NCBI GenBank assembly: GCA_002269645.1
Contig: NIVC01003125.1
Span: 1-27,892 of the forward strand
From: Macrostomum lignano
Lineage: Eukaryota
Reading direction: 5' to 3'
DNA: 27,892 nt
Below the pieces are notes generated by a model that was given only the letters and a program-made list of their open reading frames with translations, did not search any database and was not told where the DNA came from. Positions 2,512 to 25,603 of this stretch are shown piece after piece (position 1 is the stretch's first letter; each line of letters opens with the position of its first letter). Both the position numbers and the translations under genes were made by a program.

Positions 2512-4137
2512 CCATAACTTACAGTCACCTACCCCTTACTCGTACAGCAGCTGCGTCAGTGAACCAATGCAACAGCAGCACCAGCAGTTGATACAGCACC
2601 AGCACACTCTTCAAGCTCAGTTGCCGTCAGCGTCTATCTACAGCCAGCAAGTTCAGCAGCCTCATCATCATCATCATCATCATATACAGAATCCTTACTC
2701 GATAGGCTACCATCCCCAGCATCAGCAGCAGCATCCTTCATCATATTATCATCTCCATCAGCTGAATGAAAGCATTGGCATGGACGGCTATCAGTTTAGC
2801 TATGGTGACTATCAGCATCATCAGCATCATCAGCTGCATCAACAGCAGCTTCATCTGCAGTATCAGCAGTCTCAGCAGCCTCATCAGCACACTGATCAGC
2901 TGAGATCTCGAGCTGCGGCTGCTGCGGCTGCTGCTGCGGCTGCGGCTGCCACCGCTGCAGCGGTGGCCACTGCCGGTCAGTACGCTGCCGCGGCCGCTGG
3001 AGCTGGAGGCACCGACGACCTCACCGGCTACTCGTCCAGCGCACCTGGCTTCTGCGTCGACGAGCCAATCAGCGGCGCCAGTGGCGGCGCTTTTGATGGC
3101 GCTGCCGGCTATAGCGCCGGATTTTATGCCAGCGGACGGGAGGAGAGCTGCGGACAGTTTTATGACTCGCTTGTTGGCGGAGGGTAAGGGAGTTTGCTTG
3201 ATGCTTTTCATTGTGCTTTAATTATCTAACATAGTTGCCAGAGAGTAGCGAAGGGTAGAAGAGGGTAGCGAAAGGTAGAAGAGGGTAGCGGAGGGTAGCG
3301 GAAGGTAGAAGAGGGTAGCGGAGGGTAGCGGAAGGTAGAAGAGGGTAGCGGAGGGTAGCGGAAGGTAGAAGAAGGTAGCGGAGGGTAGCGGAAGGTAGAA
3401 GAGGCTAGCGGAGGGTAGCAGAGGCTAGCGGAGAGTAGCGGAGGGTAGAAGAGGCTAGCGGAGGGTAGCGGAGGGTAGCAGAGGGTAGCAGAGGCTAGCG
3501 GAGGGTAGCGAAGGGTAGAAGAGGCTAGCGGAGGGTAGCAGAGGCTAGCGGAGGGTAGCGGAGGGTAGTGGAGGGTAGCGGAGGGTAGCAGAGGCTAGCG
3601 GAGGGTAGAAGAGGGTGGCGGAGGGTAGCGGAGGGTAGCCAGAAGTCTTTAAAAAGCGCCAGCAGCAGTGCAGAGTATGAACTCTACCCTTCACAGTTCA
3701 ATAACTCGTTTCCAAACTCCGCGCATACCTTCTTCTCGCAGTTTCCAGTCGGGCATTCCGGTGCCAGTAGTTCGCAGCTCGCATTCCTACGCGTGGAAAT
3801 CAAATTTTCACGATGCCCAGCAGCAACAGCAGCAGCAGCTTGCAGCAGCCGGATATCAGTATGCCTATCAGGTGAGTCAGATATAAAACTTATGATACTC
3901 AGCAGCCCCTGGTGCTGGCGCCCTTGGTGCTGGCGCCCCTGGTGCTGGCGCCCTTGGTGCTGGCGCCCCTGGTGCTAAAGAGCCATTTCTTGTGCAAGGC
4001 ATGATAAAATGCTTGTATAGCACTGTGTATGAGTAGTATACGAGCGTAGTAGGAGTATAGCTGGAAATATGAAAATTATTTTAATTTTTTTAAATGAACT
4101 TTTTTTTCAGTCCTCAGAGCAGCTCGCAAGCAGCTAG
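2512..4137 (+). CDS. AHR: Q/H/A-rich C-terminal (transactivation-type) exons of the same AhR-like gene: 2512 (or 2548/2551)-3183, ~3657/3663-3871, 4111-4137
   Basis: Phase-2 donor at 748 matches phase-2 acceptors at 2512/2548/2551. The 206-aa ORF is polyQ/H/A-rich. Donors GG|gtaag (3184) and CAG|gtgagt (3872), acceptor tttttttcag|4111 gives SSEQLASS*, with AATAAA at 4206. The 3657-3871 exon needs an internal frame switch; unspliced read-through would stop at 3185-3187. Confidence 0.65.
3241..3640 (+). repeat. Intronic 10-bp purine-rich tandem repeat (gagggtagcg and variants), about 40 copies
   Basis: Direct reading; lies between the donor at 3184 and acceptors at ~3657-3663. Confidence 0.95.
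3903..3976 (+). repeat. 15-bp tandem repeat (gcccctggtgctggc / gcccttggtgctggc alternating), 5 copies, intronic
   Basis: Direct reading; follows the donor at 3872. Confidence 0.9.
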
Positions 4138-4999: not shown

Positions 5000-6045
5000 T
5001 CAGGCTTCGGAGCGTGTGCGTCTTCTTCAAGGGAGAAGCGGTGTGGAGCTATACTCCCAGTACACTGGACTCAACTCGTGTTTTCCAGAGCGAGGTGCTT
5101 GCCATTAGCTCCTGCGCGGCAGAACTGCGCCGAAGGCAGCTTAGCGGCTGGAAATTGATTTTTCACTCTGCTGACAGTCAGGCAGCCCTTCGGGCCCTCT
5201 GCCGCAGCACCACCAGTTCCAGATCTGTCCCAGCTCAACGGGCTTGCGCAAGACAATCAGGTGGAGCTCAAATGGATCCCGGTCCACGCTGGTTTCCTCG
5301 CCAACGAGCGCGCTGACCTGCTGGCCAAGGCTGGCTCCGCCGGTGCGCTGCTGGGGCCGGCCTCCTCCCTGCCTCGGTGATGAACTCCCGCGTTAAGCGC
5401 TGGGCTGATTCCGAGCATCTCCGCAGGTGGCAAGACGCTCAGAATTGCAGGCAATCCAGTGCTACCGTCCCAGCTGTCCCTCCCCCCTCCTGCGCGGAGT
5501 TCTCCTCAGGCTGAACCGAGAGACCTTTAGAGCAGCTATAGCATCCATGGGCCTCTCCGGGCAATAGCTGCTTGATCTCGCCACCGCTTCCTTCAGGGCC
5601 AGGTACCTGATGAGGAGTTGTGCCCCATCTGCAGCTCAGGCAGTAAAAACGCTGAGCACTTTATCTGCCACTGTCTGGTTTTCACCACGGCCAGGCTCAC
5701 TCACCTAGTGCCAAAACCCGCGGTTTTCTCCGACGTTTGCAGGCCGAGGGCATATACCGCTGCTGTCCCGGTACCTCAGAGATACGGGGACGAGCTGATT
5801 CTTCCCCACCGCCGGTGAGGAGGACCGCCTTGCAGGCGGGACCGACGGGTCCCCCTGAGCGACATCACTTCGACGGAAGTCGTTGGTTGCCATGATCGGG
5901 GGGCGGCGATCTCCTCTGCCTCCTGCAGATCGCTGCACCCGCCGGACGATGCCCCTGTAGCTAAAGTCAAATACGTAACGTGGATACATCGTGGATTCAT
6001 CGCCTAAATAACTCATACGTATACTGCTAACTAATAACTAACAAC
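5000..6045 (+). mobile_element. 5'-truncated, frameshifted non-LTR retrotransposon (LOA/R1-group-like): RNase H, C-terminal CCHC knuckle, 3' UTR
   Basis: Motifs across frames: VFQSEVLAI, SADSQAALRAL, WIPVHAGFLANERADLLAKAG (RNase H), HLRRWQDAQNCRQS, CPICSSGSKNAEHFICHC. TAA-rich tail near 6027-6045. Boundaries approximate; no clear TSD. Confidence 0.85.
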
Positions 6046-7379
6046 GCAGTGACAACAATTACACACACATCTCCAGGCTCCGTTTTTCACATTTCGCCTT
6101 TCTGTGGTTAGTTTTGTTTCTTGTCCTTTTGTAAATAATGTATTTTAATAAAAAAATAATTCAGATTGTTATTTATGGGTTATACGAGTTTTATTTAACA
6201 CGGTTTAAATCTATAATTTGTTGATATTTTTAAAGGTTTTCAAAGAAATTTTTTTCGAAAACTGTTTTTTAAACAAACCATGGCCTGCACAGCGATAATT
6301 ATAGCAAATTAGGTGAATTTAAATTTATATTAAAGTGTTTTCTCATTCCCATTGCATTTGTTGTGTAATCCACGGTAAAACTTATACAGTGTAATGCAAT
6401 CTCTCATCAAAACCCCTAATCAACACTGCACTGATCCATTAATTTGAGGCTGTTAGTTGAGGCTGTAGCCTGTAAAATACCTTGATATTTGAACGGAACG
6501 AGCTAATTGATATTTAGCTACGTTGCGTGTTGGTTAGGCTTGTTTATTTATGAGCTTATGTTTCGGCTGCTGTACTGGAAGTGTATCTATCGTCTCTATG
6601 ACTTGGAGCAATTCTAGTATTCGTAGTATAGGCCTAATGAGTTTCAGTTGAAAACAAAGTTAGGTCTACCCTGTGATGCTTGTATATGCATATTGCGCAT
6701 CTGTGCGCATCTGTATTTTTTAGCTTCTTAAGCCTACGCCAATCTTATCATTCAAGTCAAAGTGATGCTCTTTTAAGATTTTGATGTTTAAAAAGAATTA
6801 AACAATACTACATCTGCATTCACATTGCAATAACCAAAAATGTGCAACAGATGCAAAAAATGCTCAACAAAAGTTGTGCCAGCTATAATAGCTTGGTCTG
6901 TTTTAATTGTTTTTACTGGATTGTATTTCTACTTTGTGTAAGTACTTAGTTATTGTTGTTCAAATTTTAACCTTCTGGCTCTTTGGCAAATTATAATATT
7001 ATAAGTGATGATAAATGATTATGCTTTAAAATATTAATTAATTTAGGAGCATTCAAGTCCTTATTTAATAATTAGTTGGGTGCATGACCAAGATGGCCAC
7101 ACACCAAGATGGCTGCAGCTTTAAATGTATAAATAGATAATAGTAAGCCTATATATATAATATACGCACTCATTTCTTGTTGGTAATAATTTGTATTAGA
7201 TATACTATATCATACTATAGATCCTTAAGTCTTGGGGGGGATAGATGCTATAATAGAATTATTTTAAATTAAGAACATACCCTTTGGTTTTAGCTTTTAT
7301 TATAGCCTAACTTATAATAATAATTATTATCTACTAAATAAAGCAAGTAACTTGGTGTTACACTGCTTCCTAAGACAAG

Positions 7380-10300
7380 TAGGCTGTCCAATGTGATAAC
7401 AAAAGTTTGTCAACAAAATTGTAAAAAGTTACAAAATAGTGTCAACTTTGATTTCAAATTTTGGATAAAGTATTGTGTGCACAGAACTGCTGAAATATAC
7501 ACTGAAAAGAAGAAAAAAAACTCTGTAATCTGGCCAAACCCCAAGTAAAATTATTAATCCTCGTGTGATTATTTGTTAACTGAAAATAATATACTTTTCG
7601 TGTTTTTTCCTTTTTGGTTGATTTTTTACGAAAAAAACTGCTTTCACAAAATCTAAATTTAAAGATTTAAAAAACCATTTTTAACAAAAAGGATAGTATA
7701 AGTATGAAAGTAAACATTCCACTTTATATTTTTAGAATATTTCAAGGAAAAAAAGTTTTTCCTGTACACCTGTATTGCAATTGAAAGAATCTAATACAAA
7801 AATAATCAGGTTTCCTTCACATTGGCAAGCAATTTGACTTTTTTCTTAGAAAGATATGCATACCAGTAATTACATGCAGAAAGAATTTTGTAAGTTGCTT
7901 TTCCGCAACATAGTTATTGTATATTTTGTAGACCATCAAAATACATGTAAATCTCCATTGAAAAGCAGATATTGCTTCTTACTATTCTAATTTATATTCA
8001 GCAGAAGTTTTTTTGCTGAAAATGAAGTAATTATAAGGGGGTGAACTTTTTGAGCTACTCATAGCCATTACCATGCATACCGCAAGCTGGATTTCATGCT
8101 TTGATCCTAAATATGCACATACTACTTATATGCTACTTAGTAGAAAAAATATTTTTTTTGCGTAGAAATGCATACATATACTTATAAATATGCTGTTTTC
8201 GAAAAAATGTTGATTTATTCATCTTCTCTTTCCAATCTGCCTAATATAGAAGTAAATTTACTTCCATTTAGCAAGCGACTCTACCAGCATTTTACTTCCA
8301 TTTCTTTTTAACCATTGACCAAAGGCAAATGCAATCATTATTATCAATGATGGTATATGTATAGATGTATGTACATTGTATGAAAATGTAAACAAGACAC
8401 TAAGTCATTAAATAAACTTCTACAGGAGGCGCAGGTCTCACCAATCCAGTCACAATACAAGTCGTATTCGAATTCCTCCCCTTCGAAGTCATTGAACTCT
8501 ACCAAGAACAGCAAATCGAACACATCGTGGCAGATGCCAAGTGTAGGAAGCTGCTCAATAATGCGCCCTGAATTCCACTCTTCATATCCTCTTCCTTATC
8601 ATCTTCATCGACATACAGAAACGGCATTTCGATTCGCTGATCATTGCAAAGGCGTGGCATGCCAGCTAGGAGGAGGTGGTCAAAATTGGCTGATGCTGAT
8701 GGCCTAGCAGATTGACTCCCGCATGCACACCTCTGCCTCGTGACCGCGACAAACTTTGGCTGCGTCCGCGACCATTGGATGCGCCTCTGTGCATTCCACG
8801 ACCTCGTCCACGACCTAATTGTCCACTGTCAGCATCAGTGCCTGGCCTGGGGGCAGCAGGTTGTCTAGCACCCTTTGCCAAGATGGCTTGGATGACTGTG
8901 CTGACCCGCTCCTCACGGATGGCCAGCGAGTCCATGGCAACTGAAGCTGTGCGCTGACCATCCTCGTTCTGCTGGGGGGTCTGTGCCAGAATGCCCAGCA
9001 CCTCGCACAAATTTTCACGGAGCTGTGCAGTTGAAAAGCGCACACCACCTGCTGAAAAATTCAGCAAGCGGACTTTGTCCTTCGGTAGGACAATCTCTAA
9101 AAAAGAATTGATAAATAAATCTAAATGTTTTCCTAAGTCTTAACATTCTCCATGTGTAAATAAAAATTTTTCTGCTATAGGGACATACTCGTTGCCTTGT
9201 GGAGCCGGAGCTGAGCTTTTAATGCCTGCTCATGCTCAGCAGGTGACAAGGCTGCCAGCTGACTGTCCACGTCATCTGCACTACGCCACATGCCACCGAA
9301 TGCCTCGATGCCAACAATGGCATTTTGCAAAGTGGACGCCCGTAGCTCCTGCTTGCGCTGCTTCTCCAGCATCTTGTCGTGCAATAGCTCCTGACGTCTG
9401 TGACGAACAAATTCTGCGGAAGTGCGCGCGCGCTTCTCCATGGTTGGTGCCATGACTCGGGCCCGCGACATGATCAGCTGTTTTTCATGCTGTGACTTTG
9501 TTTCCAGCCACTCAGCAGTGCAGTTCTGGCTGAAAAGAACAGCTGACTCGCGTGCCAAATGCCTCATGTTCGGCTTGCCATGCACCGTGTAGTCCAAAAC
9601 AGCGAACATCCGCTCTCCAGCTACATTGTCTTTTGGTGCCTGAGCAGCTGCTGCCGTGTCCTCGGCAGACAGATCTCGCAGACGACCTCCTTGTAGGTGA
9701 TCAGCAACTTCCCGCTGAAGCAGCACAAGACAATGGGCGCATAGAACCTGGGTATGAAAAATGGGTTATTTTACTTCAATTAGATACATGTAATTGTATA
9801 TCTGCTTCATTGTACACTACAGTACTGTACATTAAAGTGTGACCAGACTAAGCAAATAACATAAAATATCTGACCTTGAGCGCTTGACTGACAAGACTAG
9901 TCTCCGCAGATACCTCGTCCGAAGTCAGCGACTCCCACGAAGCCCGTGCATCATCATCCTGAAGCACAACACCGGAAAGCTCCGGAAATGGGCCCTCCAG
10001 CTCTGCAGTCGGGACAACCGTCTCAGCCGATGTCATTTGCTGGAGCCAACTGCAGGCAGTCTCATATCGCTCATTCATGTCGATTAGGGTCACGCGGGAG
10101 TCCCGAAGCAGAAACCAGAGAGGACGAATGAGCAACAGGTCGAGCAAGCCCAGAGCACGGCATCCGGCCAACAGGATTGCAGATTTGAGGTCTGCTTCGA
10201 CCGCGAGAAGCAGGCGGTTGCTACAGTGGTATTCCGACAGAAAGGCCAGTAGGAGATCCTTCTGCCGGTAGACATAACCGCCATTTGGAAAAATGACGTA

Positions 10301-13262
10301 CAGTCGATTACCGCGAAAGTCTTCCATCCGGAAGCTGGGCGCACCTTTCGACGCCAGGAAGGACTCGAATGGCATGGCAACACCGCATTGCTCGTTTCCC
10401 AGCTTATGAAAAGCCTTGCACGTTGTACGAATAAGACGCTGAGTACCTGATTCCGACTTTGATGGACGAAAGCCCCCAATTGCAGCGGAACCGATTAGCT
10501 CAGACGTGGCACATTTCTCAGTCGAACAGTCCCTTATCCACGGCACCAGCCAAGTTTACAATGACATGCATGCCGCAGAAGAGCGATACAACAGGAGGAG
10601 GCGGCGCCTTTCCGTGTTCACCGGCCAGTTGAGAGCGCATGTCGTTCAGAAGAACCTGAGTTGCGTAGACGCGTAGATGCAGGTGAGGTGGCGGTAGAAA
10701 AGTACACTAGTTCTGTAAATAATCAAAATTTTTATAATTTTTATATTTATTTGCTTCAAATATTTCAATTTCTTACCTGAAGGCTCTTGTTAACGACGTG
10801 GCGATCTGTCATCAGAAATTTTAGGCGCATCATCACGTTGTACTTCATCTTCTGGCGCTCCTCTTCACTGCCTTCCAAAGTTAGTGCGCAGAAGGTGTCT
10901 ACAAGTTCATCGATAGAGGCGTCCAACTCGCGAAGGTACGTTTCCGCGGTGCCGCCTTCCACTTCTCGCAGAGACAGGCCAACATGGCGGTTGTCAGCTG
11001 AGCCGAGGTCAATCTGTAAAATGCAACCAATTTTTTTATTTTGACTCTTTAGGAAAACTTGATGCCTTGGCTTTATTGAAACGAGGAAATTATTTTATTC
11101 CATGTACATGTACACGCATTTTGCAGGTCTCCATTCATCTCCACTCACCTGGTACTCAGCGTAATGCCGACCTTCTTTGACGTGCCGTCGGTCATCAGCG
11201 TGAGTGGCTGATCTGTCTGTGTGACTGCCAGGATTTTGTCCATCCCACTAGCCTTCGCCAGACAGTTTCCGACGCTGAATGCACAGCTAGCAATCAGCGA
11301 CTTAGACGGCAGCTCCATTGACTTCGAATCAAAGGATGTGAACCCCGCCAGGACATGCTGGATGCACGGGGACACAATCGGACTGGGACATGGCAGTCGA
11401 GAACGAGCTTTACGCAGGTTTCAATTACCTAGTTAAAGATCAATTTCGAAATTCGATTTTAGTTTTACTACATGTAGCAGCAAAAGTAGAACAATACTGA
11501 TAAGAAAATAGAGAATAGCATACATAAAATTTATAGCTATTGACTATTGTATTGAACTTATAAGTATCTCATACCTGGTTACTGTATTGCAGTCCTCCTC
11601 TGGGGCGGTTCTCCTTCGTCGAAATCAAGTTGCCTTTCTCCGCCCCCTCCAGAGAGATCGACACCTGGTCCAGACTGCTGTGGAGCTCGCGAATCTCGCG
11701 TTGCAGCTCACCGACTTTCTGCTTCGAGCTCTGCTGGGACACGCTTTGTCGGTCATGCTGTCTGACCTGGGCTCGAAGCTCGCAAATCGTTTCGCGCTGA
11801 CGCAGATTCTCCTGCAGCAGCTGCTGCACCTTCTTCTTCGAACTATCAACTTTCGATTGCAGAGTTCGGAGCTGCCGAGTATAAAAGCCGGCACTAGGTC
11901 GTTTGGCAAGACGGCAATGCAGGGCGTGGAGCTGCTGTTCCTTCTGACACAGCTGCCGTCGGAGGTCGGAATTGATGTCCGACAGAGCTGCCTGGACGCC
12001 AGTTTGCTCCTCAACTGACATAGCGGATGAGGCCTGCTGGTGAATGCGATCTGTGCTAGGAAGCAGATCAGCTTCAGCGTCGCCCATGTCAAGATCATCC
12101 ACTTGTTCGGGCTCAGCTGGCAGCCTTTTCCCTACAAAATGCTGCACCTCTTGGAGAAGTACTTGAGGCACATCAAAGCTGGCTTCAAGAAAGGCATCAT
12201 AAGACGAATGAAGCTTGCCAGACTTCAGTTCGCGCTTGTGATCTCTGTACAAATCTTGTGCCTTCTTCTTGCAATGGCGGACCTTTCGCAGAAGAGCCTC
12301 TTTGCACTTGTCACTAAGGCTCACCGAAATGAGCCCCATTGCACGAAGCAGGCGAGTTGCCATAGCAACGCCTGTTTCATTTTTACTTCTCGCCTTTTCG
12401 AAAAAATGGATGGCCCTTTGATTTGAAATGACCACAAGGCGATCTTTTGAAGATGATGCCATTTTAACTTTGAATGAGAAGGCTGAAAATCCATGTTCAT
12501 GAAAAAGTGCATTGGCCTTTGCCAACAAAACTAGTGTTGTGCAATATAAATAGAATTGATAAAAACATTTTATAATATTTATCATTCCCTAATAAACTAA
12601 GAATAAAATACATTACATAGCATAGGTACCCTATATTAGAACTTAATGAGATAATAAAGATTTAAGTCAAATATATACATTTGTGCAGTAAAGGTACAAA
12701 TTAATTATATATAGAAATGAATAAAACAACAATCTTTTCTCTAGATAATTAATTCTCAGCAAAACTTTATATAATATTTAATATACATGTTCTTAACACA
12801 AGGACAAAATAGTGAGAGTATATCTTCCATATTTTTCAAGTTTTCCATGTTTGAATAAAAAAATCATGCATCCGGTAGCTTGTATTTTTATATTTTTTAA
12901 AAATTCTTTTACAAAATCCAATGATATCTCTATAAATAGACAATGACAAATATATCACAAAAATGAAAACAATTTCTTTTTTCAAATGACACCAGAGCCA
13001 ATAATTTCTTGCCAAAAATAAGAAAGTTATGTTCATTTAAACACAAAAAAAATTTTCCAGAACGAAAAAATGAACCAGATCGTAATGTATTTTTGTCATC
13101 TAAAAAGTTCAAATTTTTAAACACAAAAATCGTTATAACTTTTTTATTACTAGTTCAATTTTCATGAGTGAAGTCTTTTTGGAATGCTACAAACATCCTC
13201 TATAATGTTTTATTGTTAGATTAGCAGATTTTTTTACTTTCAAAGTCTCATTGGACAGCCTA
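7380..13262 (-). mobile_element. Cut-and-paste DNA transposon, 5,883 bp, DD-CxxH-E transposase group (hAT/P/MULE/Kolobok-like; superfamily not assigned)
   Basis: Perfect 14-bp inverted repeat taggctgtccaatg (7380-7393) / cattggacagccta (13249-13262), 21/27 identical when extended. It brackets one transposase gene and AT-rich subterminal DNA. Confidence 0.8.
8420..12462 (-). CDS. Spliced transposase, about 1,140 aa after repair; exons 12462-11575, 11428-11149, 11013-10777, 10655-9875, 9747-9189, 9096-8420; six apparent frameshifts
   Basis: Five GT-AG introns (146, 135, 121, 127, 92 bp), phases consistent after repair. Catalytic-type motifs LMTDGTSKK (D at 11187-89), LMTDRHVVN (D at 10804-06), FCGMH (10566-77), FRGNR, NVAGERMFAVLD (E at 9613-15). 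C-terminus ...DWIGGDLRLL* ends at TAG 8420-22. Confidence 0.8.
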
Positions 13263-13652
13263 TCCTAAGTTCTTGAAAATGTTCCTAGAAATAGAACTCA
13301 CTGCTCTGGAAGTAGCTAGATAGCACTGTTGTACTATCTATCAATTTGTCTAAAATTGAACCTGAAACGTTAGCCTTAACTTGGTAGGGTTGCTGCTACC
13401 TTGGTGTGTAGACTCGACGCGTTAGCAGAGTTGTCTATCTGTCACCTGAAATAAAATAACAAAGTTGCTCGGAGCAAAGGCAAATATGAAAATGTCTCAA
13501 CAGTCAATCGTTCTAGTAGAATGTTGCTCAACTCAAACCTGAAACCTGAAAAACCTGAAATGAGAGAGGAAAGCTCAGAGGCAGAGAGGCAGCTCCAGTC
13601 GAACCCAGGCAAGATGATGCAATCTGGAGAAAAAAGGCTTGCAGATGCTCCA

Positions 13653-14012: not shown

Positions 14013-16199
14013 TTGGGTAGTAAACACTTGGGCCTAGCACAGGGTAACTCTCACTAGATCAGGTGGACTGAGCCACTGTGCAACAGATCACAGCGCCCTT
14101 AGGAAAAGCTAGTGAATGCTGCTGAATAGCCAGTTAGCAGCTAGTCACTGCACTCTCCCCGTCCAAATTAAATTATAGCAGCAAAACGATGATTCAATTT
14201 ATTTGAAAAGAACAATTTGGCTCTAATAAAGCCACGCAAATTTTATTGAAAATTTTTTAATAAACTAAGGCAGCGCTAATTATAGAGTTGGTGTACAAAG
14301 CGCGCAAAAGTCAAAGCTGCTAGTCATGAATCAAATTGTTACGTACAAGTATTATCAGAGATTTTTGATTGTACATGTTTTAATGAATGATTGTTAGTGT
14401 AATAAGTTTTTTTGAGATGCTGAGTTCAAGCTGAATTGAATGAAATGTTAGAGTAGAATAGCGTATTAGTTTTGAGTTGTACATACCAATGTTTTAATGA
14501 GAGATAACTTATTTTTGCAACTAATTGTTGGACTCAACCGTCCTAGTGTTTATGAATTTCAAAATCATACAAAATGGTGAAGCTCATCTGGGACTTGGGT
14601 GGCTTGACCTGAGAAAAAAACATTTTGAGGATGGCTAGTTCCAAGGACTTTGCATGCGGCGGTTCAGGCAGAAGGGCGGTGGCGGTGTGGCGGGCCACTT
14701 TGGCAATGACTAATACTAAGTAGATAATGAGGCATTTTGCTTTAATAAGATAGTCATAGTTACTCTTGCTGTTTATCCAAAGTTGCATTAATTTTACTTA
14801 AAGGTTTCTTTTATATGTAAGTTGCATTTTTGGCCAAAAACTACATCACATTTTTTTTAAAATTAAGTTGCATGGCTGACTGAATTTTGGAGGTTGTGCA
14901 TATATGGCACAAAATAAATACCTTGTTGCATATATATCATTTTTTGTTTAGCATTACTACTAGCAATGGTTTCTTGATAAACTAATAGTGAGAAATTTGA
15001 TAGATGTAATAAATTGGTACAAACACAAAAAAGATTGAAGTTTTGTATTATAGGTAATTAGTTTCAAATCTACTATTGTAGCTTGCCTGAGCCCCTCATC
15101 AGTATTTATAAATATTAATATGTTTTATTTAACATATTAGTTAATATTACAATAGCTATTAAGTTGCTAATTAATGGTACAAAGAGAAAGAGTAGATATA
15201 ACAGAAATTCAATGCTGTGGCTATCTTGGTCTTACACCATTAGTTGGCCTTTATTCTTTAAAAGAATACCAACTTGGTCTGTTTTGCTTTAAAAAATAAA
15301 AAAGTAATTATAGTTATTAGGGTTTAATAAAAAATATAACTATTTTAATGCTGATAAAATCATTTATATCTAATGTATTTATTCTTTTTACAATTGTTTA
15401 CTAAATAAAAATGAGATACATAGGCAATAAATGACCTATAAGCAAAAGGAAGGCATATATATTGTAAATTTCTATAATATACTCAAGAAATTTGGTGTCC
15501 ATGTTTACATTCAAAATGTTATACTAATATAATAATTATTTTTAGTCTTTAACTTCATCAAATTGAAATTAAATATCAAAATCACTAGTCTAGTAGTAAT
15601 GTTTCAAAATTGACAACTTGAAGCTGTATTTAAGGTATGTATTTGGCATACAATAGTGTACACAAAAAATTGGTCATTTTTTCTGGGTACATTCAGTGTT
15701 TTGAACTATGATAAGTAACAAATATTGTTTTTTTTTGCTAGCACTAACTAAGGTATAAAATTGCATCTAAGGTCTTATTTTAGAAGATTCAGTAAGTAGG
15801 TCATTTTAGTAACAGGATGCATTTGATAATATTAGTTGGTAGTTATTTTGGTAAATTTTTTTTATATTTTAGCAATTACACCAATAGATTGTTACATATA
15901 TTCCGAATTTAGGATTATGTCATTTTTGCCAGAATTTCTAGTGAATATTTGTAATAGCTAATGGATACTTTTAATATACAATTTTTTTGAAAAGTCTTAT
16001 GGCACATATATCTAAATTTTGATATATAAGATACATTATATGGCATATATATACTTATTCTAGACCTGAAAAAGGTCTAGAATTGCTAGAAATTGCTAGA
16101 ATTGCTAGGAATTGCTAGAAATGGGACAAAATGGAAATTTTAAACAAATTTGATTCAAATATCTAATAGAACCAATTCAAATGCTGAATAAGAATACTT

Positions 16200-16560: not shown

Positions 16561-19397
16561 TTTCTCTTCATTCTAAATATTTGTTCCACATCAAAGCAAT
16601 TATTTGGTATTCAGATTGTCATCAACTTTCTGATTTTGATTTGAACCAAATATTTAGTCAATTCAATTTGATTCTGAGTATTCTGAATATTTGTCCCATC
16701 TCTAAAAGAGGCTGCATCATGCCAATATATTTTGTACAAACACAAGAAGTCATATATAAGTTATGAAAAATTGAGTATTTTTTGAAAATTTTAATTAAAG
16801 AATTTATATAGCATAAAGTTATAAGTATATAGTTTAACAATTCTTTTGCAAACATTATAAATATGTAAAGGATAACAGCTTTATCAAAAAACATTAGTAA
16901 TTTTTTTAATTTATGTAAATTTTTCTATGAACTGCATAGAATACCATCATATTTGTTCTATGTAGCCTATAAGAATTTTCATTCCTACATGTATGCTCTT
17001 TAGTGTTTTTAATAAAAAGAATAGACAGTAAAGCCACTTGCTTCACTCTTTTCCCTTGTCTGCCTCTGCAGGTCCAAAGGCATTGCCATTGCCTTAGCTG
17101 GGCTATAGAACTGCAGCAGCCTAGGCCTAGAAATGCTTTGAATTTAATTCTTTGCTATTCAATGTGATCAGAAGGTGCAAGGAGGATGCATACATTAAAA
17201 ATAGAAGAATATTGAATTCGTTCCAGAATATTCAAACATAAACAAAAAGGATCCTCCTCATGAAATGCCCAGTGAGAAAAGCATAGATAAATATTCACCA
17301 AATTAAAAAAATGCAAATTTGAAAGATCACTTGCATTGCAATCTGTTAATAGTAATAAACAAAATTAAATGAAACAAAAATTTACCATTTTCAAAAACCT
17401 TTAAAATTTTAGTCAATGTAATAGCAACAAAAATGTTGTTAGATCATTTTCATTTGGCTGAACTCTATATTGCCTAGCCATCCTATACAAATTGCCAAGA
17501 TTGAATAAGAATTCTGGCATTGATAGACTAGATAGATAGTATAGTTGGACTAATTGTCAATTCTTGCAAATGGCTTCTAGATGACAATAGCATGAGACAT
17601 GGACTGCAATAAGCAAAATTAGACATTTTTGGATAGCCAGATAATGTGGATTGTAATAAGCTATATTCACCTTGAGAAACAGAATTGGATACATCATACT
17701 TCTAGCAAAACTGATGTGCATGGCAAAAATAGCAAAGGACATTCTTGCTCAGGATCTAGAGCAAGTGTTGACTAGCATTCTAGATATAACAATTTTAAAG
17801 CCTGACTCATGCAAACTTCAGGATCACTATTAGTTTAAGCACAATAAATGATAAAATGATCTAAAGGCTAATGTCAAAAATACTTATTTGGATTAAGAAA
17901 TCTTTTGACACATTCAATTTCATGTAGCATGCATTTGATTGGCCACTTTTTATATGCCGTATGCTGTGCTAGATGATCCCAACAAGTCTTTAATGAATGA
18001 TTAAAGAGATTTAATGAGTCATTTCCACACTGGAAAATGATTTCAGACTGTTAGACTCCATCAGAAATAGCCATTACAATTGTCTTCCAATATGGATTCT
18101 CCTTTAGGCTCATTCCATATAAGCATGGTCGTAACATGACAGGCTATTTTTACTTATAAAATGAAATCTAATAATAGAATATACTAAACCAATATTTTAA
18201 ATGAAAGATTATTTTGTCTAGAATATATTTATAGAGTTTCATATAGATATCATCATTAGTATAGATGCTATTAAACCTTAAATGACACTTATGGTCATAA
18301 CGACAGGATTTTTGACATATAGAAACTAAAAGGTAAAAGTCTTATAACATTTTTCATTTTTGATATTTTGCAATACATTTTTAAAATTTGACTAAGAACA
18401 TCTTTAGAAATCATACTCTTTTATTAGAATATATAAACTCAAAAGGCAACAAAGATACAAAAGAAAAGGCAGCCTTATGGTCATAACATTATGGTCGTAA
18501 CATATTTTTTTCTGTTAATTCAGTAACTTTGAGGTACTAATACATTAAAAATATAATAGATTATTTGGTCACCAATGCTTTTATCTGATGATGCAAGTAC
18601 TATACTTTTATCTATAGTTTGTTTCAACCTTCAAAAGCTTTCTATTTGTTTTTAAAAGGTACAAAATCTTAATGATGTCTTTTGCTTCGAAAAATGTCCA
18701 AATTTTTACAAATATGACTTTTTGCCAATTGATAACATACTAATCCAACATTTTATCATTTATTTATTCTTAGATTGTATATATTGCACATAAAAAACAT
18801 TTGGTAAAAAAATAGGCTGATAAGGCAATGGCAAGCAAAAATATTGACTTTTTTCTATTTTCCAAATATGTCCATCTTATATGGATTCTCCTTTAGGTTT
18901 TTGTATTTTGTTTCATTACAATCAATGCATGTGTCTCTTGATACAATTTCAATTGTTTTGTCACTTATGAAGAACACTAATAGGAATTATAATGCATGAA
19001 TTAGACTTTTAAAAGCATGCTTATTTGGCTTATAATTTATACTCATATTTCTTTGGCCCTTTTATTCCTTCTTACATTATATCTATCTACTATATCTACT
19101 ATGTGTAGACCTCTTAAATCCTTAAATGCCCTAATAAATAGTTAACTGATTTCAATATTTGTTTCACTTATATAGATGAAAGTAGTTTTATTCCTATTTG
19201 ACAACCAAATATATAATTGTTTGGGGGGTATATAGGGGGATTCTCCCTCTCTCCTTTCTTCCCCCTCTCCATCCCTCTCCTCCCCTCTCCTCACCTATTA
19301 TATGCTGTGACAGCAACAGACTGGCATCAGGCACAAGTTGGCAAGCCTTGCCCAGCCTAGCACTAATCATACCAATTCGCTGTACACATACACTCAG

Positions 19398-22122
19398 GTC
19401 GCCTTACCTAGCCGAGACTTTGTCAGCCGCGGTGCCGGCAGTCCACGCCTTAATCGTATTCTTTGTCGTGGCCAATTTCACCCGGGCCACCTTCCTAGAC
19501 CCCGGCTTATATCCGCGAGCCACCGCCGAGGAGGCCAGAGAGGACGAAATCCGCGGATTATTATTTAAACCTGTCACTGTTCGAGGCTGCCAATCAAAAA
19601 TCAAATGGTGTTCAACCTGTCAGTTCTATCGGCCGCCCAGGTGTTCGCATTGTTCAGCCTGCGATCAGTGCATTGACACGTTCGATCATCATTGTCCGTG
19701 GGTTAATAACTGTATTGGCCGGCGGAATTACCGCGCATTCTTTTTCTTCTTGGTATCGCTGACTCTGCACATTGCCGGCGTGCTGGTTGCTTGCGTCTAT
19801 CACATTGTGATGAATCGAGAGCGATTGAATCAAGCGGAACCAATTGTCTCTATTGTCATTATTGTAGTCGCTGGCTTGCTGTTTGTGCCTGTGACTGGCC
19901 TGACAGGCTTTCATTTCTTCTTAGTTAGCAGGGGGCTCACGACTAATGAACAGGTTTGTTTTGGCGTTTATATTGTTTATGATTTCCTATGATTCTTTTG
20001 TCCCATGTGTTTATTTATGAATAGATCCTCTAGAATTATCCACTATCCCATGTGTATAGATCCCATGTAGAGTTATCCCCTATCCCATGTGGATAGATCC
20101 CATGTAGAGTTATCCCCTATCCCATGTGGATAGATATCCCATGTAGAGTTATCCCCTATCCCATGTGAATAGATATCCCATGTAGAGTTATCCCCTATCC
20201 CATGTGAATAGATATCCCATGTAGAGTTATCCCCTATCCCATGTGAATAGATATCCCATGTAGATTTATCCCCTATCCCATGTGAATAGATCCCATGTAG
20301 AGTTATCCCCTATCCCATGTGAATAGATCCCATGTAGAGTTATCCCCTATCCCATGTGAATAGATATCTCATGTAGATTTATCCCCTATCCCATGTGAAT
20401 AGATCCCATGTAGAGTTATCCCCTATCCCATGTAAATAGATCCCATGTAGAGTAATCCCCTATCCCATGTGAATAGATATCTCATGTAGATTTATCCCCT
20501 ATCCCATGTGAATAGATCCCATGTAGAGCTATCCCCTATCCCATGTGAATAGATATCCCATGTAGATTTATCCCCTATCCCATGTGAATAGATCCCATGT
20601 AGAGCTATCCCCTATCCCATGTGAATAGATCCCATGTAGAGTTATCCCCTATCCCATGTGAATAGATCCCATGTAGAGTTATCCCCTATCCCATGTGGAT
20701 AGATATCTCATGTGGATTGATCCCATATCCCATGTGGATTTATAGCATATCCCATGTGGATAGATGTAGATTTATCCCCTATCCCACGGGGATAGATCCG
20801 ATCAAGAGTTATCCTCATTATCAACAAAGATCAACAAAGAAACAACAAAGATTTCCCCAATCCATGCTCAGGTGACGCACAAATACCCTGTCGGAGGTAA
20901 TCCGTTCGATCGCGGTTGCCGGGCCAACTGTCTGTGGGCATTGTGCAGCGCCCAGTTCCCCAGGCCGTCGCGGCCCGCAGCTTCAACGGCCAGGACTGCC
21001 AGGCGAGCTCGGCAGCAGCGACTCCGGGCTGGCGACTACGCCTATGACGAGGCCAATGTAGAAGACGACCATCACCGAGTTGTCGTGGCCTCGGCAGCCG
21101 GCGATGGCTACCCGTCAGCTCCGCCGCGTCAGCAGCCACCATCGGCTTCGACCGTTGTTGTCGTTTCCCCTAGCAACAATGGCCGGCAGCAGCAGTCGGG
21201 CGGAGTTGTTAGGACGGCTTCTAGGGGAGAGCGGACTGTGAGTTGCTGTTGGTGTCATGTCTGCTTGTTTGGCATTAGCCCCCTGTCATTAGCCCCTGTC
21301 ATTAGCCCCTGTCATTAGCCCCTGTCATTAGCCCCTGTCATTAGCCCCCTGTCATTAGCCCTGTCATTAGCTCCTGTCATTAGCCCCCTGTCATTAGCCC
21401 CCTGTCATTAACCCTGTCATTAGCTCCTGTCATTAGCCCCCTGTCATTTGCCCCCTGTCATCAGCCCCTGTCATTAGCCCCTGTCATTAGCTCCTGTCAT
21501 TAGCTCCTGTCATTAGCCCCTGTCATTAGCCCCCTGTCATTAGCTCCTGTCATTAGTCCGCTGTCATTAGCTCCTGTTATTAGTCCCTGTCATTAGCCCC
21601 TGTTATTAGCCCCTGTCATTAGCCTCTGTCCTTAGCCCCTGTCCTTAGCCCCTGTCATTAGCCTCTGTCAAATTAGCCCATGTTCTTAGCCCTTGTCCAT
21701 ACAAAGTGTCAAGAGTCAGCCAGTGTGTCAGATATAGTATCAGTCAGTCAGTAATTAATCTAACAGTAATTAGTGCCCGCTATTCACAATCCCGATCAAC
21801 AATGGCACTTACCCCATCATCGCAACAGATATCGCAGACCTCCGCTGGAGCTCCTGGCGCCCCCTCGGCTGTTGTTGGGATGACAATGGGAGATCCGTTG
21901 CTATCCCATTCTAATCGGTCGGATTCTTATAATAATTTCTACAACCCTGGTGATCAGTACCAGCAGCAGCAACAGCCCCAGATGCAGACAATACAATATC
22001 ATCCCTCTAGCGGCCGAGTTAGTTTCATTCAGCAGCCACAGCAACAGCAGCAGCAGATTCTTTATCATCACCAGGCCTCTGCGTCCAATATTGATCCTAA
22101 TCAACGCGTTGTACCATTTTAA
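19398..22122 (+). CDS. ZDHHC5/8: DHHC palmitoyltransferase of the ZDHHC5/8 type; exons 19398-19953, 20872-21237, ~21829 (or 21748)-22122; first coding exon not located
   Basis: DPG motif; [43 protein letters not shown]; TTNEQ|[12 protein letters not shown] joined across phase-0 intron 19954-20871. Donor gtgagt at 21238; Q-rich tail ending RVVPF*. The last acceptor is uncertain. Confidence 0.9.
20035..20790 (+). repeat. Intronic minisatellite, 37/39-bp unit (tatcccatgtgaatagat[at]cccatgtagagttatcccc), about 18-20 copies
   Basis: Direct reading within ZDHHC intron 19954-20871. Confidence 0.95.
21273..21697 (+). repeat. Intronic 12/13-bp tandem repeat (cattagcccctgt)
   Basis: Direct reading; begins about 35 bp after the donor at 21238. 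Confidence 0.95.
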
Positions 22123-22254
22123 ATCTTATTTACAATAAGACTAATCAAAGAGTTAATTTTTGCTATTTTGTTTTAATGCACTAATTACTGTTTATGTTTG
22201 TCTATATTAAATGTGTAATATTATTATTGGTAACTTCAATTCAGAGCTTACTCA

Positions 22255-22950
22255 TGGAATGGTCATTGGCTACTTTAAATGGTGTTATTGGTTACTTTAG
22301 TTGGTCATTATCTACTTAAATGGTCGTTGGCAACTTTAATTGGTCATTGGCTAATTTAAATGGTCATTGGCTACTTTAAATGGTCATTGGCGACTTTAAA
22401 TGGTCATTGGCTACTTGAAATGGTCATTAACTTACTTTAGTTGATCATTACTTTAGTTGGTCATTATCTACTTAAATGGTCGTTGGCAACTTTAATTGGT
22501 CATTGGCTACTTTAAATGGTCATTGCTTACTTTAAATGGTTATTGGTTACTTTAAATGGTTATTGGCTACTTTAAATGGTCATTGGCTACTTGAAATGGT
22601 CATGTGCTACTTTAGTTGATCATTGGCTAGTTTAGTTGATCATTCGCTACTTTAAATGGTTATTGGTCACTTTAAATAGTCATTGACTACTTCAAATGGT
22701 ATTATTGGTTACTTTAGTTGGTAATTAGCTACTTTAGTTGATCATTGGCTACTTTAGTTGATCATTCGCTACTTTAAATGGTCATTGGCTACTTTAAATG
22801 GTCATTGGCTACTTTAAATGGTATTATTGGTCACTTTAGGGTCATTGACTACTTCAAATGGTATTATTGGTTACTTTAGTTGGTCATTAGCTACTTTAGT
22901 TGATCATTGGCTACTTTAAATGGTCATTGGTCACTTTAACTGGTCATTAG
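22255..22950 (+). repeat. Degenerate ~20-bp tandem repeat (tggtcattggctactttaaa), about 30-35 copies
   Basis: Direct reading, downstream of the ZDHHC stop. Confidence 0.9.
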
Positions 22951-23700
22951 ACGCTAGAGTTCGAATGCCAGTAAAAATAATTGGAAAAAATGTTTAAAAG
23001 TTTTGAGGCATCTTTCAGTTCACACTCAGCTCTCGATTATGTTGTGTGCTATAGAGTTTTTTGTATACTAAAACAGCTTTAACTGTTATTTGTTACCTGC
23101 TTGTCTGTGCGCGCAAGTGAGCGGTATTGTAATTTTGCAGCTTCTACATTTTATTAAATAATTGTAGTGGCTTAAGACTACTTGATAATATTCAGGTGTC
23201 AATCATTCACCGTTCAGAGTCAATCAGTCAGATAAAGTCAGTATTTGGTATTCATTTATTTTCGCCTAAATGTTTTATTTTTCCATTTGTTTTCTCTTCT
23301 AGTCTTGTCGTCGACTTTATAGTCCCACGGGGCGGGTAATTTGTGCAATATGTTTGTAATTAAATTAGAGTAGTAAGTAACTAATGGCTTTTTAAATTTG
23401 TTTTTTTCCTTTTATTTACTTTTCAAGTACGAAACGGTTAATGGCGTTGATAGCCGCAAAGCATGATTGTATATTATTGGTATTTGTGCCATAGACATTT
23501 ACGCCGAAGCCCCGCTTGTGACCATGTTTTTTATTGGAGGCAGGGGGGGGCTGTGTGCACCCTGGCGCACTTTAAGCGACATAGGCACACAACCGGCGAG
23601 AGGCATTACTGCCCATTCCGCCGACTCCCCTGAGCAGGCGCACAAGCGCGCGGATACGTACGCAGGCACACACTCACACAGGAGTGTACAGCGACCCTAA

Positions 23701-23870: not shown

Positions 23871-24678
23871 AGACTTTTGACCATAGACTATTTTACTCTT
23901 AAATGAATCGAGTCACCGATTTGTCTATGGTAGTTGACCGATTTTTTTGCTAGTTGGACGCTTAGAGGACGATTAGATAACTGCAGCTGTTGCGTCATTG
24001 TAAACTAAGAGTTTCTCTATACGCTGTTTGAGTTGGTTTAATTAAATTCAGGTAAAAGGTTTCGACATGTCTGTGTTATTACTATCAATGATATTATTTT
24101 AATTATTTATTGCTTTTTTTGTCTTAAATCTGTTTAGCAGCAACGACCCGTTCTATGCAATCAGTGTTTTCTGCGCGCGTGTGAAGTACAGCTTACTTGT
24201 TTGCTTTCTCTCTCTTTGGTACATGTAGTTCATTATTAACTCAATCATATTTGTATAGGCGCTGCTATTGCTAAAGTACTCGTACAATATAAAAGATATT
24301 GTCATTTAGAAAAAAAAACAGTTAGTCGGAGTTAATCACAATCTCTCATTAATAAATTTTGACCTGAAAAAAACACTTAGCGCTTATTTTGTACACTTTT
24401 TGTTTTTCTATCTATTAATGCATTGATTTTTTGTATGTTAATACAAAATATAGATATTATTTGTTAACAGTAGTCTAACTTGCTACATGTAGTGCTGTTC
24501 AAAATGTCATCTGTATCAGTGTTTTTCTTAACTATGTCAGTCTAATAAATTCAATGGCTTTCTGGATGTTTGCAAATGTTTTTGATTCGTTGTTGTTTTT
24601 TATCTTGTTTATTTCAGAACCACAGCCACCTCACACCTCCCCACCCACCCCCTCACTGAATGTACACTCGGCTTCAGA

Positions 24679-25459
24679 CAGACTAGCCATAGAATGTACA
24701 CTAGTCACCCAGCTCCAATCAGACTAGCCATAGAATGTACACTAGTCACCCAGCTCCAATCAGACTAGCCATAGAATGTACACTAGGCACCCAGCTCCAA
24801 TCAGACTAGCCATAGAATGTACACTAGTCACCCAGCTCCAATCAGACTAGCCATAGAATGTACACTAGTCACCCAGCTCCAATCAGACTAGCCATAGAAT
24901 GTACACTAGTCACCCAGCTCCAATCAGACTAGCCATAGAATGTACACTAGTCACCCAGCTCCAATCAGACTAGCCATAGAATGTACACTAGGCACCCAGC
25001 TCCAATCAGACTAGCCATAGAATGTACACTAGTCACCCAGCTCCAATCAGACTAGCCATAGAATGTACACTAGTCACCCAAGCTCCAATCAGACTAGCCA
25101 TAGAATGTACACTAGTCACCCAGCTCCAATCAGACTAGCCATAGAATGTACACTAGTCACCCAGCTCCAATCAGACTAGCCATAGAATGTACACTAGGCA
25201 CCCAGCTCCAATCAGACTAGCCATAGAATGTACACTAGTCACCCAGCTCCAATCAGACTAGCCATAGAATGTACACTAGTCACCCAAGCTCCAATCAGAC
25301 TAGCCATAGAATGTACACTAGTCACCCAGCTCCAATCAGACTAGCCATAGAATGTACACTAGTCACCCAGCTCCAATCAGACTAGCCATAGAATGTACAC
25401 TAGTCACCCAGCTCCAATCAGACTAGCCATAGAATGTACACTAGTCACCCAGCTCCAAT
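24679..25459 (+). repeat. Highly homogeneous 41-bp minisatellite (cagactagccatagaatgtacactagtcacccagctccaat), 19 copies
   Basis: 781 bp = 19 x 41 + 2 (two 42-bp units). No spacers. Confidence 0.97.
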
Positions 25460-25603
25460 CAAAACGCATAACAACAGACCGTAGGATAAAATTTTCATTT
25501 TACTCTCACTTGCATGCTAGCTAGCACAATGCAAGTGCAATAATTTTTTTCAAAGCTGATTTTGTTTTGAAAATAACAAATATTTTGCGCACAACATCTT
25601 GTC

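Follow-up and report, generated by a model that had tools for sequence, protein, structure and literature searches.

A decayed hAT-like DNA transposon of Macrostomum lignano with a Spin/Ssty domain at the C-terminus of its transposase

The contig NIVC01003125.1 of the flatworm Macrostomum lignano (GenBank assembly GCA_002269645.1), analyzed here over its 27,892 nucleotides and called the window below, carries a 5.9-kb cut-and-paste DNA transposon, the transposase gene of which ends, in decayed form, at 8420–8711 of the minus strand. The ancestral protein of ~1,150 residues is composed of an N-terminal coiled coil, a Hermes/hAT-type catalytic core of the RNase-H fold with the Asp-Asp-Glu (DDE) residues, a CxxH motif and a large all-alpha insertion, a linker rich in arginine and glycine (RG-rich), and one C-terminal Spin/Ssty barrel. 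It is a hAT-like transposon with an acquired reader domain of the Royal family, analogous to chromodomain integrases. The identities of the element and of its Spin/Ssty domain are assigned with high confidence, and the complete explanation, in which the tail would also tether the transposase to a mark on histone H3, is the one that we favor overall with more reserve.

An earlier note on this DNA had proposed that the transposase continues past the stop at 8666 of a listed open reading frame (ORF), across two 1-nt shifts, into a hidden Spindlin-type Tudor domain. Three-frame translation of 8380–8720 reproduced the quoted peptides exactly, and the minus strand from 8669 to 8420 reads LAGMPRLCNDQRIEM...DWIGGDLRLL* across two 1-nt deletions. 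The first piece of this tail (8669–8589, LAGMPRLCNDQRIEMPFLYVDEDDKEE) is followed by two leftover bases (8588–8587) that mark the first deletion, the second piece (8586–8440, YEEWNSGRIIEQLPTLGICHDVFDLLFLVEFNDFEGEEFEYDLYCDWIG, including YEEWNSGRII...LYCDWIG) is followed by the leftover bases 8439–8438 of the second deletion, and the third piece (8437–8420) encodes DLRLL and ends with the stop codon 8422–8420. The part of the proposal that had to be amended concerns the junction with the upstream gene, as three shifts separate the transposase ORF from its end. The listed ORF, which closes at the TAG 8668–8666 of the minus strand (...SRGRGVHAGVNLLGHQHQPILTTSS*), is RG-rich and runs in a frame different from that of LAGMPRL; a third frameshift at ~8712–8716 is needed to connect the tail with the RG-rich upstream part, which ends at ~8717. 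There the ancestral reading exits the RG-rich frame and goes on as SARPSASANFDHLLLAGMPRL, in the SARPSAS...LAGMPRL frame that starts at 8711. Because of this frameshift the TAG lies outside the ancestral frame, and its interpretation as an in-frame nonsense codon was rejected. The last part of exon 6 (8420–8711, minus strand) accordingly holds a linker (SARPSAS...) and the decayed Spin/Ssty domain in three frames (8711–8589, 8586–8440, and 8437–8423).

A peptide repaired in this way might be a product of chance, that is, of reading a 3′ untranslated region through frameshifts with no real domain behind it: three frame changes are required, the repaired peptide alone has no significant match in the PDB, and its BLASTP comparison with SPIN1 gives an E-value (E) of only 0.013–0.023. 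However, the repaired 81 residues align without internal gaps and with 59% identity to the C-termini of the M. lignano proteins PAA87338.1 (P0153; 1158 aa) and PAA94379.1 (P0151), both of which run in frame as ...RGRGRGRG...GLPRLYAGLRIEMLFAYVDEDSDVADYEEWNAGYIIRQVPTPGLSRDVLDQRFLVEFDDFPGKPVPYDLYRDYIRGDLRILANDWDSDD, and the Spin exon is intact at three M. lignano loci (L001, L002, and L003). The repaired window peptide also scored 17.6 bits against a hidden Markov model (HMM) of the non-flatworm family tails, compared with 7.8 bits for the best of 1000 shuffles, and the profile and hhalign results described below are concordant. Chance readthrough is refuted by the identity, the intact exons, the shuffle test, and the flatworm-tail profile, and we leave it a vanishingly small probability.

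The tail belongs to a motif, LLVGKRIxHRF...W/Y.G.VISQVPGFP.WFNI.Y...VY.Y.LLDDY..GDL.I, that ends at least 31 of 166 family proteins, and a combined HMM found it in 39 of ~176. Searched against the PDB, a profile of 15 family tails matched spindlins only (spindlin-1/2/3/4; E, 6e-39 to 8e-33), with the highest similarity to repeat 2 (61–66 bits) and lower scores for repeat 1 (36–41 bits) and repeat 3 (25–26 bits); the tail of Diadema setosum by itself is 40% identical to repeat 2 of human SPIN1 (E, 1e-16). For the flatworm-type tails, a profile of four sequences (P0153, the L003 exon, the repaired window peptide, and the bridging sequence P0071) gave spindlins as all of its 17 best matches in the PDB, from an E of 2.9e-4 and aligned to repeat 2. 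A PDB search with the repaired tail, which had been suggested as a check of the proposed domain, was thus unproductive with the single peptide and found spindlins once the peptide was part of this profile. In hhalign comparisons, values of 93.4% and 95.9% were obtained against the three SPIN1 repeats and the other family tails, respectively. The structure models were made for M. lignano relatives of the window copy. The AlphaFold2 (AF2) model of the P0153 tail (predicted local distance difference test score (pLDDT), 88.6) is a small barrel with strands at residues 10–18, 25–39, 52–57, 65–67, and 78–80, showing the four core strands plus an extra strand of a Tudor-like barrel, and its top seven PDB matches by Foldseek are all Spindlin-1/4 with a probability of 1.0. 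The hidden C-terminal domain of the earlier note is therefore borne out by the family-tail and flatworm-tail profiles, hhalign, and the model, and is most like spindlin repeat 2. Some observations weigh against the assignment: the Foldseek E for the 89-aa tail model is only 0.04–0.1, the alignment supplied to AF2 included spindlin-like family tails, and no single flatworm tail, either the repaired window peptide or an intact M. lignano one, found a spindlin in the PDB.

Typical family tails share with SPIN1 repeat 2 a 40% sequence identity, the LLDDY..GDLrI motif, a predicted barrel of the same type, aromatic residues at all four positions of the methyl-lysine cage, and both of the anchoring Asp residues. 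They differ from human Spindlin-1 in having one repeat (two in a few members) instead of three integrated ones and in being fused to a transposase, and the flatworm clade differs further from repeat 2 by an insertion of 7–8 residues before the third strand, replacement of a conserved His by Met, and Phe in place of Tyr residues. Spindlins consist of three tandem repeats in one globular unit with no other domains; because a single repeat stands here at the end of a ~1,100-aa transposase, the protein is one that carries a Spin/Ssty domain and not a spindlin. Two tandem Spin/Ssty repeats are present in the transposase tails of P0060 (the cluster of Strongylocentrotus purpuratus LOC105446121), P0048, and P0043. 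In P0074 (1254 aa) and P0141 (1140 aa), the Spin/Ssty domain is replaced by another barrel-like tail (..VAVGFENTWYLGEI..IKYM...F.WP..DD..) with weak PDB matches to Agenet/DUF724 proteins (E, 0.12–0.17), which may be a swapped reader module.

In SPIN1, the pocket for trimethylated Lys4 of histone H3 (H3K4me3) is formed by Phe141, Trp151, Tyr170, and Tyr177 of repeat 2, the α-amine of H3 Ala1 is held by Glu142 and Asp189, and H3 Arg2 is held by Asp184, mutation of which to Ala lowers the affinity ~90-fold (PMC3967050). The SPIN1 sequence and residue numbers given in the earlier note are correct, and the aligned F, W, F, F, D, and GDLR of the window tail indeed fall on the positions of Phe141, Trp151, Tyr170, Tyr177, Asp184, and Asp189. 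Over 24 complete family tails, the four cage positions are 79–100% aromatic: the Phe141 position is Phe in 19, the Trp151 position is Tyr, Phe, or Trp in 19, the Tyr170 position is Tyr or Phe in all 24, and the Tyr177 position is Tyr or Trp in 23. The Asp184 position is Asp in 20 of these tails and the Asp189 position is Asp or Glu in 17. The repaired window reading and the L003 tail both show F, W, F, F, D, and D at the six positions, and the two Asp residues are also present in P0153 and P0071. The expectation that the cage would be conserved in other copies therefore holds for most tails and fails in one intact copy, P0153, which has Val at the Tyr177 position (cage F, W, F, V). This Val, the His-to-Met change in the GKxxxH motif of the flatworm clade, and the general divergence of the flatworm tails weigh against the explanation favored here.

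The gene upstream of the tail is composed of six exons with canonical splice sites, from the ATG at 12462 to the stop at 8420 on the minus strand. Exon 1 (11575–12462) contains the start codon (MASSSKD...) and the N-terminal coiled-coil region, and ends with ...QYSNQ|gtatga; the corresponding region of the family profile matches only coiled-coil proteins in the PDB. Exon 2 (11148–11428), which includes a 1-nt deletion at ~11378, encodes a helical, DNA-binding-like region and the first catalytic Asp (LMTDGTSK), and exon 3 (10777–11013) encodes the second (FLMTDRHVVNK). Exon 4 (9875–10655; frameshift at ~10520) covers the CxxH motif (FCGMHVIVNL) and the all-alpha insertion domain (FRGNRLYVIF, AGCRALG, RPLW), and exon 5 (9189–9747) covers the catalytic Glu motif (KDNVAGERMFAVLD...PN...N.TAEWL) and a long C-terminal helix, the window sequence around the Glu being NVAGERMFAVLD. 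The first part of exon 6 (8717–9096) encodes a conserved LPKDKVRLLNFSAGG motif and the RG-rich linker (GRGRGRG...SRGRG), and aligns to residues 1020–1046 of P0153. The RG-rich linker (8717–8830 of the window), a typical substrate for arginine methylation, is found in flatworm lineages only.

A search with the gene's longest ORF (235 aa, in exon 4) among 1.84 billion representative proteins found 702 relatives (clusters at 50% identity), the best of them from M. lignano with 69% identity. In an alignment of 16 sequences (A2), Asp385, Asp469, Cys505, His508, and Glu785 (P0153 numbering) are invariant; in an alignment of 50 sequences (A7), Asp469 and His508 are invariant, and conservation at Asp385, Cys505, and Glu785 is 90% or higher. 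In the AF2 model of the core, for which 50 family sequences were supplied (pLDDT, 93.1; predicted template modeling score, 0.88), there are an RNase-H-like β-β-β-α-β-α-β unit and the long all-alpha insertion; the two Asp residues lie on or beside β1 and β4, and Glu785 lies on the helix 491–506 after the insertion domain. The top 12 PDB matches of this model by Foldseek are all Hermes, a hAT transposase (E, 9e-7 to 5e-5; ~600 aligned columns), followed by the P-element and ISCth4 transposases with E above 0.1. At the sequence level, neither a single core sequence nor a profile found a transposase in the PDB, the core had no match in Pfam or NCBIfam, and none of the products has a recorded Pfam family. 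A word-indexed homologue search found nothing with the tail or a 232-aa ORF, and only seven M. lignano proteins, none with a Pfam annotation, with the family alignment. One relative is titled ‘DUF659 domain-containing’ in UniProt.

The gene had been taken from the outset as that of a transposase, which is substantiated by the Hermes-like DDE core and by the ends of the element. The whole transposon (7380–13262; 5,883 bp; gene on the minus strand) has at its ends a pair of inverted 16-mers with homology to the terminal inverted repeats (TIRs) of M. lignano elements: TAGGCTGTCCAATGAG at the gene-5′ end (13247–13262, minus strand), with one mismatch to the M. lignano-derived pattern TAGRCTGTCCAGTGAG, and TAGGCTGTCCAATGTG at the 3′ end (7380–7395, plus strand), identical to the other TIR in 15 of 16 bases. 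A search of the window with the pattern gave exactly two matches, inverted and flanking the gene, whereas 0.32 are expected by chance. One copy of a 7-bp target-site duplication (TSD), TCCTAAG, directly adjoins the element at 13263–13269, and the second (7368–7374) is separated from the TIR by the 5-nt spacer ACAAG (7375–7379). This spacer is present at one end only and could stem from filler DNA or a later mutation.

The 7-bp length agrees with the perfect TSDs CCTATAA, GTATAAT, and TTAAAAG of related M. lignano insertions. The two loci encoding P0001 (L001 and L002) have a common block of 7.29 kb that is 99.9% identical between unrelated flanks, with the inverted termini TAGGCTGTCCAGTGAG and TAGACTGTCCAGTGAG and the TSDs CCTATAA and GTATAAT. 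A third lineage, at the P0002 locus (L003), is represented by a 6,560-bp element with perfect 16-bp TIRs (TAGGGTGTCCAGTGAG). Adjoining the P0002 element, at 17477–19484 of L003, is a 2,008-bp non-autonomous derivative with TIRs TAGGGACTCCAGTGAG and the TSD TTAAAAG, sitting 1.1 kb within a DnaJ gene. At L001 and L002, the Spin exon (about 14030–14390) is shifted by 1 nt against the frame of the upstream part, because of which the annotated P0001 carries a spurious 80-aa tail; in PAA87338.1, encoded at another locus, the exon is in frame.

The core fold places the element with hAT transposons. As in Hermes and other hAT systems (PDB IDs: 2bw3, 4d1q, 6dwz, and 8edg), the RNase-H-like core is split by a large all-alpha insertion domain, the order D...D...CxxH...E is kept, the Glu being part of an ER.F motif close to the C-terminus, the short TIRs start with TAG, cut-and-paste transposition is accompanied by a TSD of several base pairs, and Hermes chains are the only significant structural matches of the core. 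In contrast to the hAT systems, neither Hermes nor any Pfam hAT model is matched at the level of sequence, a coiled coil replaces the BED zinc finger at the N-terminus, the TSD is 7 bp instead of 8 bp, and the Spin/Ssty domain is an addition at the C-terminus; the template modeling scores with Hermes are low (0.26–0.37), from which the domain arrangement is judged to differ. When the TIR starts are compared with the hAT consensus YARNG, TAGGG of the P0002 lineage fits, and TAGGC/TAGAC of the window and P0001 lineage agree at four of five positions. Weighing against a placement in hAT are the 7-bp TSDs of three M. lignano insertions and the window in place of the usual 8-bp duplication of hAT, and the failure to detect a BED finger or a Pfam hAT domain, including the dimerization domain, in the products. 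A 7-bp TSD does not necessarily exclude hAT, because a Repbase paper mentions hAT entries annotated ‘7-bp TSD’ (PMC4455052). Based on the TSD length, the coiled-coil N-terminus replacing the BED finger, and the lack of a Pfam match, we regard the element as a divergent hAT clade.

The Dada superfamily was considered as another candidate, with which the element has in common a TSD of 6–7 bp, a multi-exon transposase gene for ~1,000 aa or more, a DDE core with C/DxxH, and occurrence in aquatic animals. Dada transposases have DxxH and zinc fingers of the CCCC and CCHC types, and the elements lack TIRs and insert into genes for small nuclear RNAs and transfer RNAs (Kojima and Jurka 2013, PMC3706591). 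None of these features applies to the window element, which has TIRs, CxxH, no conserved Cys clusters, and AT-rich non-genic targets, and Dada was rejected.

The window copy has five frameshifts, at ~11378, ~10520, ~8714, ~8588, and ~8438, and therefore cannot make the domain as assembled; it looks dead in this form. Four of the five breaks are single-base deletions. The TIRs differ by one mismatch, the TSD is displaced, and the exons have only 68–75% DNA identity to the closest M. lignano element. Single-base deletions are a typical error of long-read assembly, and part of the frameshifts may be of this origin, which weighs against a dead copy as proven. Three of the five frameshifts fall in 8420–8730, a stretch of 0.3 kb at the 3′ end of the ~3.6 kb that code for the protein (between 8420 and 12462), where an even spread predicts ~0.4; this clustering at the 3′ end could be due to chance, local sequence context, or assembly error.

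Since the four cage positions and the two aspartates anchoring H3 Ala1 and Arg2 are conserved, we infer that the tail of an intact element probably binds H3 at its N-terminus when K4me3 or a comparable methyl mark is present. The transposase–DNA complex would in this way be held at marked nucleosomes near active promoters, which would bias the place of the 7-bp staggered cut and strand transfer. DDE recombinases combined with Royal-family methyl-lysine readers that bias integration are found in the chromodomain integrases of chromoviruses (Ty3/gypsy) and Tf1, and in lentiviral integrase with its partner LEDGF/p75. The family resembles these systems in a reader joined to the C-terminus of a DDE recombinase or brought in via a partner, the tethering logic being putative here, and differs from them in that a hAT-like transposase replaces the retroelement integrase and a Spin/Ssty domain, whose closest relative reads an active-promoter mark, replaces the chromo or PWWP domain. 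Histone-guided insertion is plausible, and target tethering is considered the most likely function of the tail, at a probability that we place slightly short of even. Three of four M. lignano insertions are within ~2 kb of an annotated gene 5′ end, two of the insertions lying between divergently oriented genes and one 1.1 kb within the DnaJ gene mentioned above. Against the tethering proposal weigh the anecdotal size of a sample of four sites, the preference of hAT and P elements for open 5′ regions even without a reader domain, and the single repeat here in comparison with the three integrated repeats behind the high affinity of spindlins.

Other explanations of the tail and of the family have to be weighed with the tethering proposal. 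Tudor domains commonly bind methylated RG motifs, and an RGRGRG-type linker stands directly upstream of the tail in three M. lignano lineages and the window. The tail might thus read methyl-arginine instead of H3K4me3, either in its own linker or in RG proteins of the host (PIWI or Sm-type), and serve in oligomerization, autoregulation, or interaction with germline granules; spindlin repeat 1 binds asymmetrically dimethylated H3 Arg8 in a similar cage (PMC3967050). However, the linker is missing from the non-flatworm members with the best-conserved tails, the tails are closer to repeat 2 with its K4me3 pocket than to repeat 1 by the bit scores given above, and the anchors of the free H3 N-terminus (Asp184 and Asp189) are kept, making this explanation unlikely. 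Another role without a part in integration would be counter-defense, with the tail as a decoy occupying the marks that spindlin-type readers of the host use to silence young transposons. Mammalian SPIN1 is reported to take part in the methylation and silencing of young transposons directed by PIWI-interacting RNAs (PMC11499256; bioRxiv 10.64898/2026.08.20.746118), and the tail closely imitates spindlin repeat 2. As the tail and the transposase form one polypeptide in every lineage observed, an arrangement that suits tethering more than it does a free competitor, and the host pathway is known in mammals only, we find the decoy very improbable.

The family could also be a domesticated host gene, an exapted hAT transposase with a reader, of which the window would hold a pseudogene duplicate. 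Annotations of sea urchin, gastropod, and gar list several members as single ‘uncharacterized protein LOC...’ genes, the gene has introns, and no Pfam transposase domain was detected in it. Mobility is indicated, on the other hand, by TIRs and TSDs in the window copy and four M. lignano copies, by the two 99.9%-identical copies at unrelated loci, and by the 2-kb non-autonomous derivative with the same TIRs; the 702 clusters at 50% identity and the DDE/CxxH residues, invariant or at least 90% conserved, point in the same direction. We thus consider domestication improbable for the family as such, while it may have occurred in some non-flatworm taxa.

The hAT-like family with the Spin/Ssty tail occurs widely among animals as a protein family in which present-day domain databases annotate no more than the last 65 residues. 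In addition to M. lignano, Spin-tailed members were found in the sea urchins Diadema setosum and Strongylocentrotus purpuratus (the latter with two tandem repeats), the clam Mya arenaria, the gastropod Gigantopelta aegis, and the spotted gar Lepisosteus oculatus. The M. arenaria member has been automatically named ‘SPIN3-like protein, partial’, and the remaining ones are annotated as uncharacterized. XP_072171738.1 and WAR05051.1 have tails of the canonical type, and PAA87338.1 has one of the flatworm type. Full-text literature searches, in which Repbase itself was not queried, found no paper on a fusion of Spin/Ssty and transposase. Built-in chromatin readers steering integration are well known in retroelement integrases and, to our knowledge, essentially uncharacterized in cut-and-paste DNA transposases.

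Bearing on the origin of spindlins are the 40% identity of the tails to human repeat 2 and the two-repeat tails in sea-urchin copies. A far-reaching proposal would be that an unnamed hAT-like clade across Bilateria has its own H3K4me3 reader directing insertion to active promoters, and that spindlins are domesticated, tandemly duplicated copies of its tail; as a whole this is speculative and rather unlikely, and the reverse transfer, in which a host spindlin exon was captured by the transposon, is equally conceivable. If the tethering proposal is true, the family would offer a natural, compact pairing of a transposase and a methyl-lysine reader, and it bears on the choice of safe or heritable landing sites by transposons, on the origin of the Spin/Ssty family, and on the targeting of transposase tools by chromatin state. 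It is directly testable, with M. lignano being culturable and capable of transgenesis.

The remainder of the window has a eukaryotic character, with AT-rich intergenic DNA, GC-rich exons, short GT..AG introns, and many minisatellites. On the plus strand, ORF pieces at 5014–5818 contain an RNase-H-like motif (VFQSEVLAI...SADSQAALRAL) and a CPICSSGSKNAEHFICHC motif, and look like the 3′ part of ORF2 of a retrotransposon without long terminal repeats. A host gene for a DHHC-type palmitoyltransferase has an exon at 19198–19992, also on the plus strand and ~6 kb away from the element. Minisatellite arrays occupy 640–2520, 3180–3700, 19947–20817, 21244–21715, 22252–22968, 24585–25574, and 26000–27700, with units of 48, 10, 37–39, 13, 20, 41, and 21 nt, and some of them give rise to long artificial ORFs.

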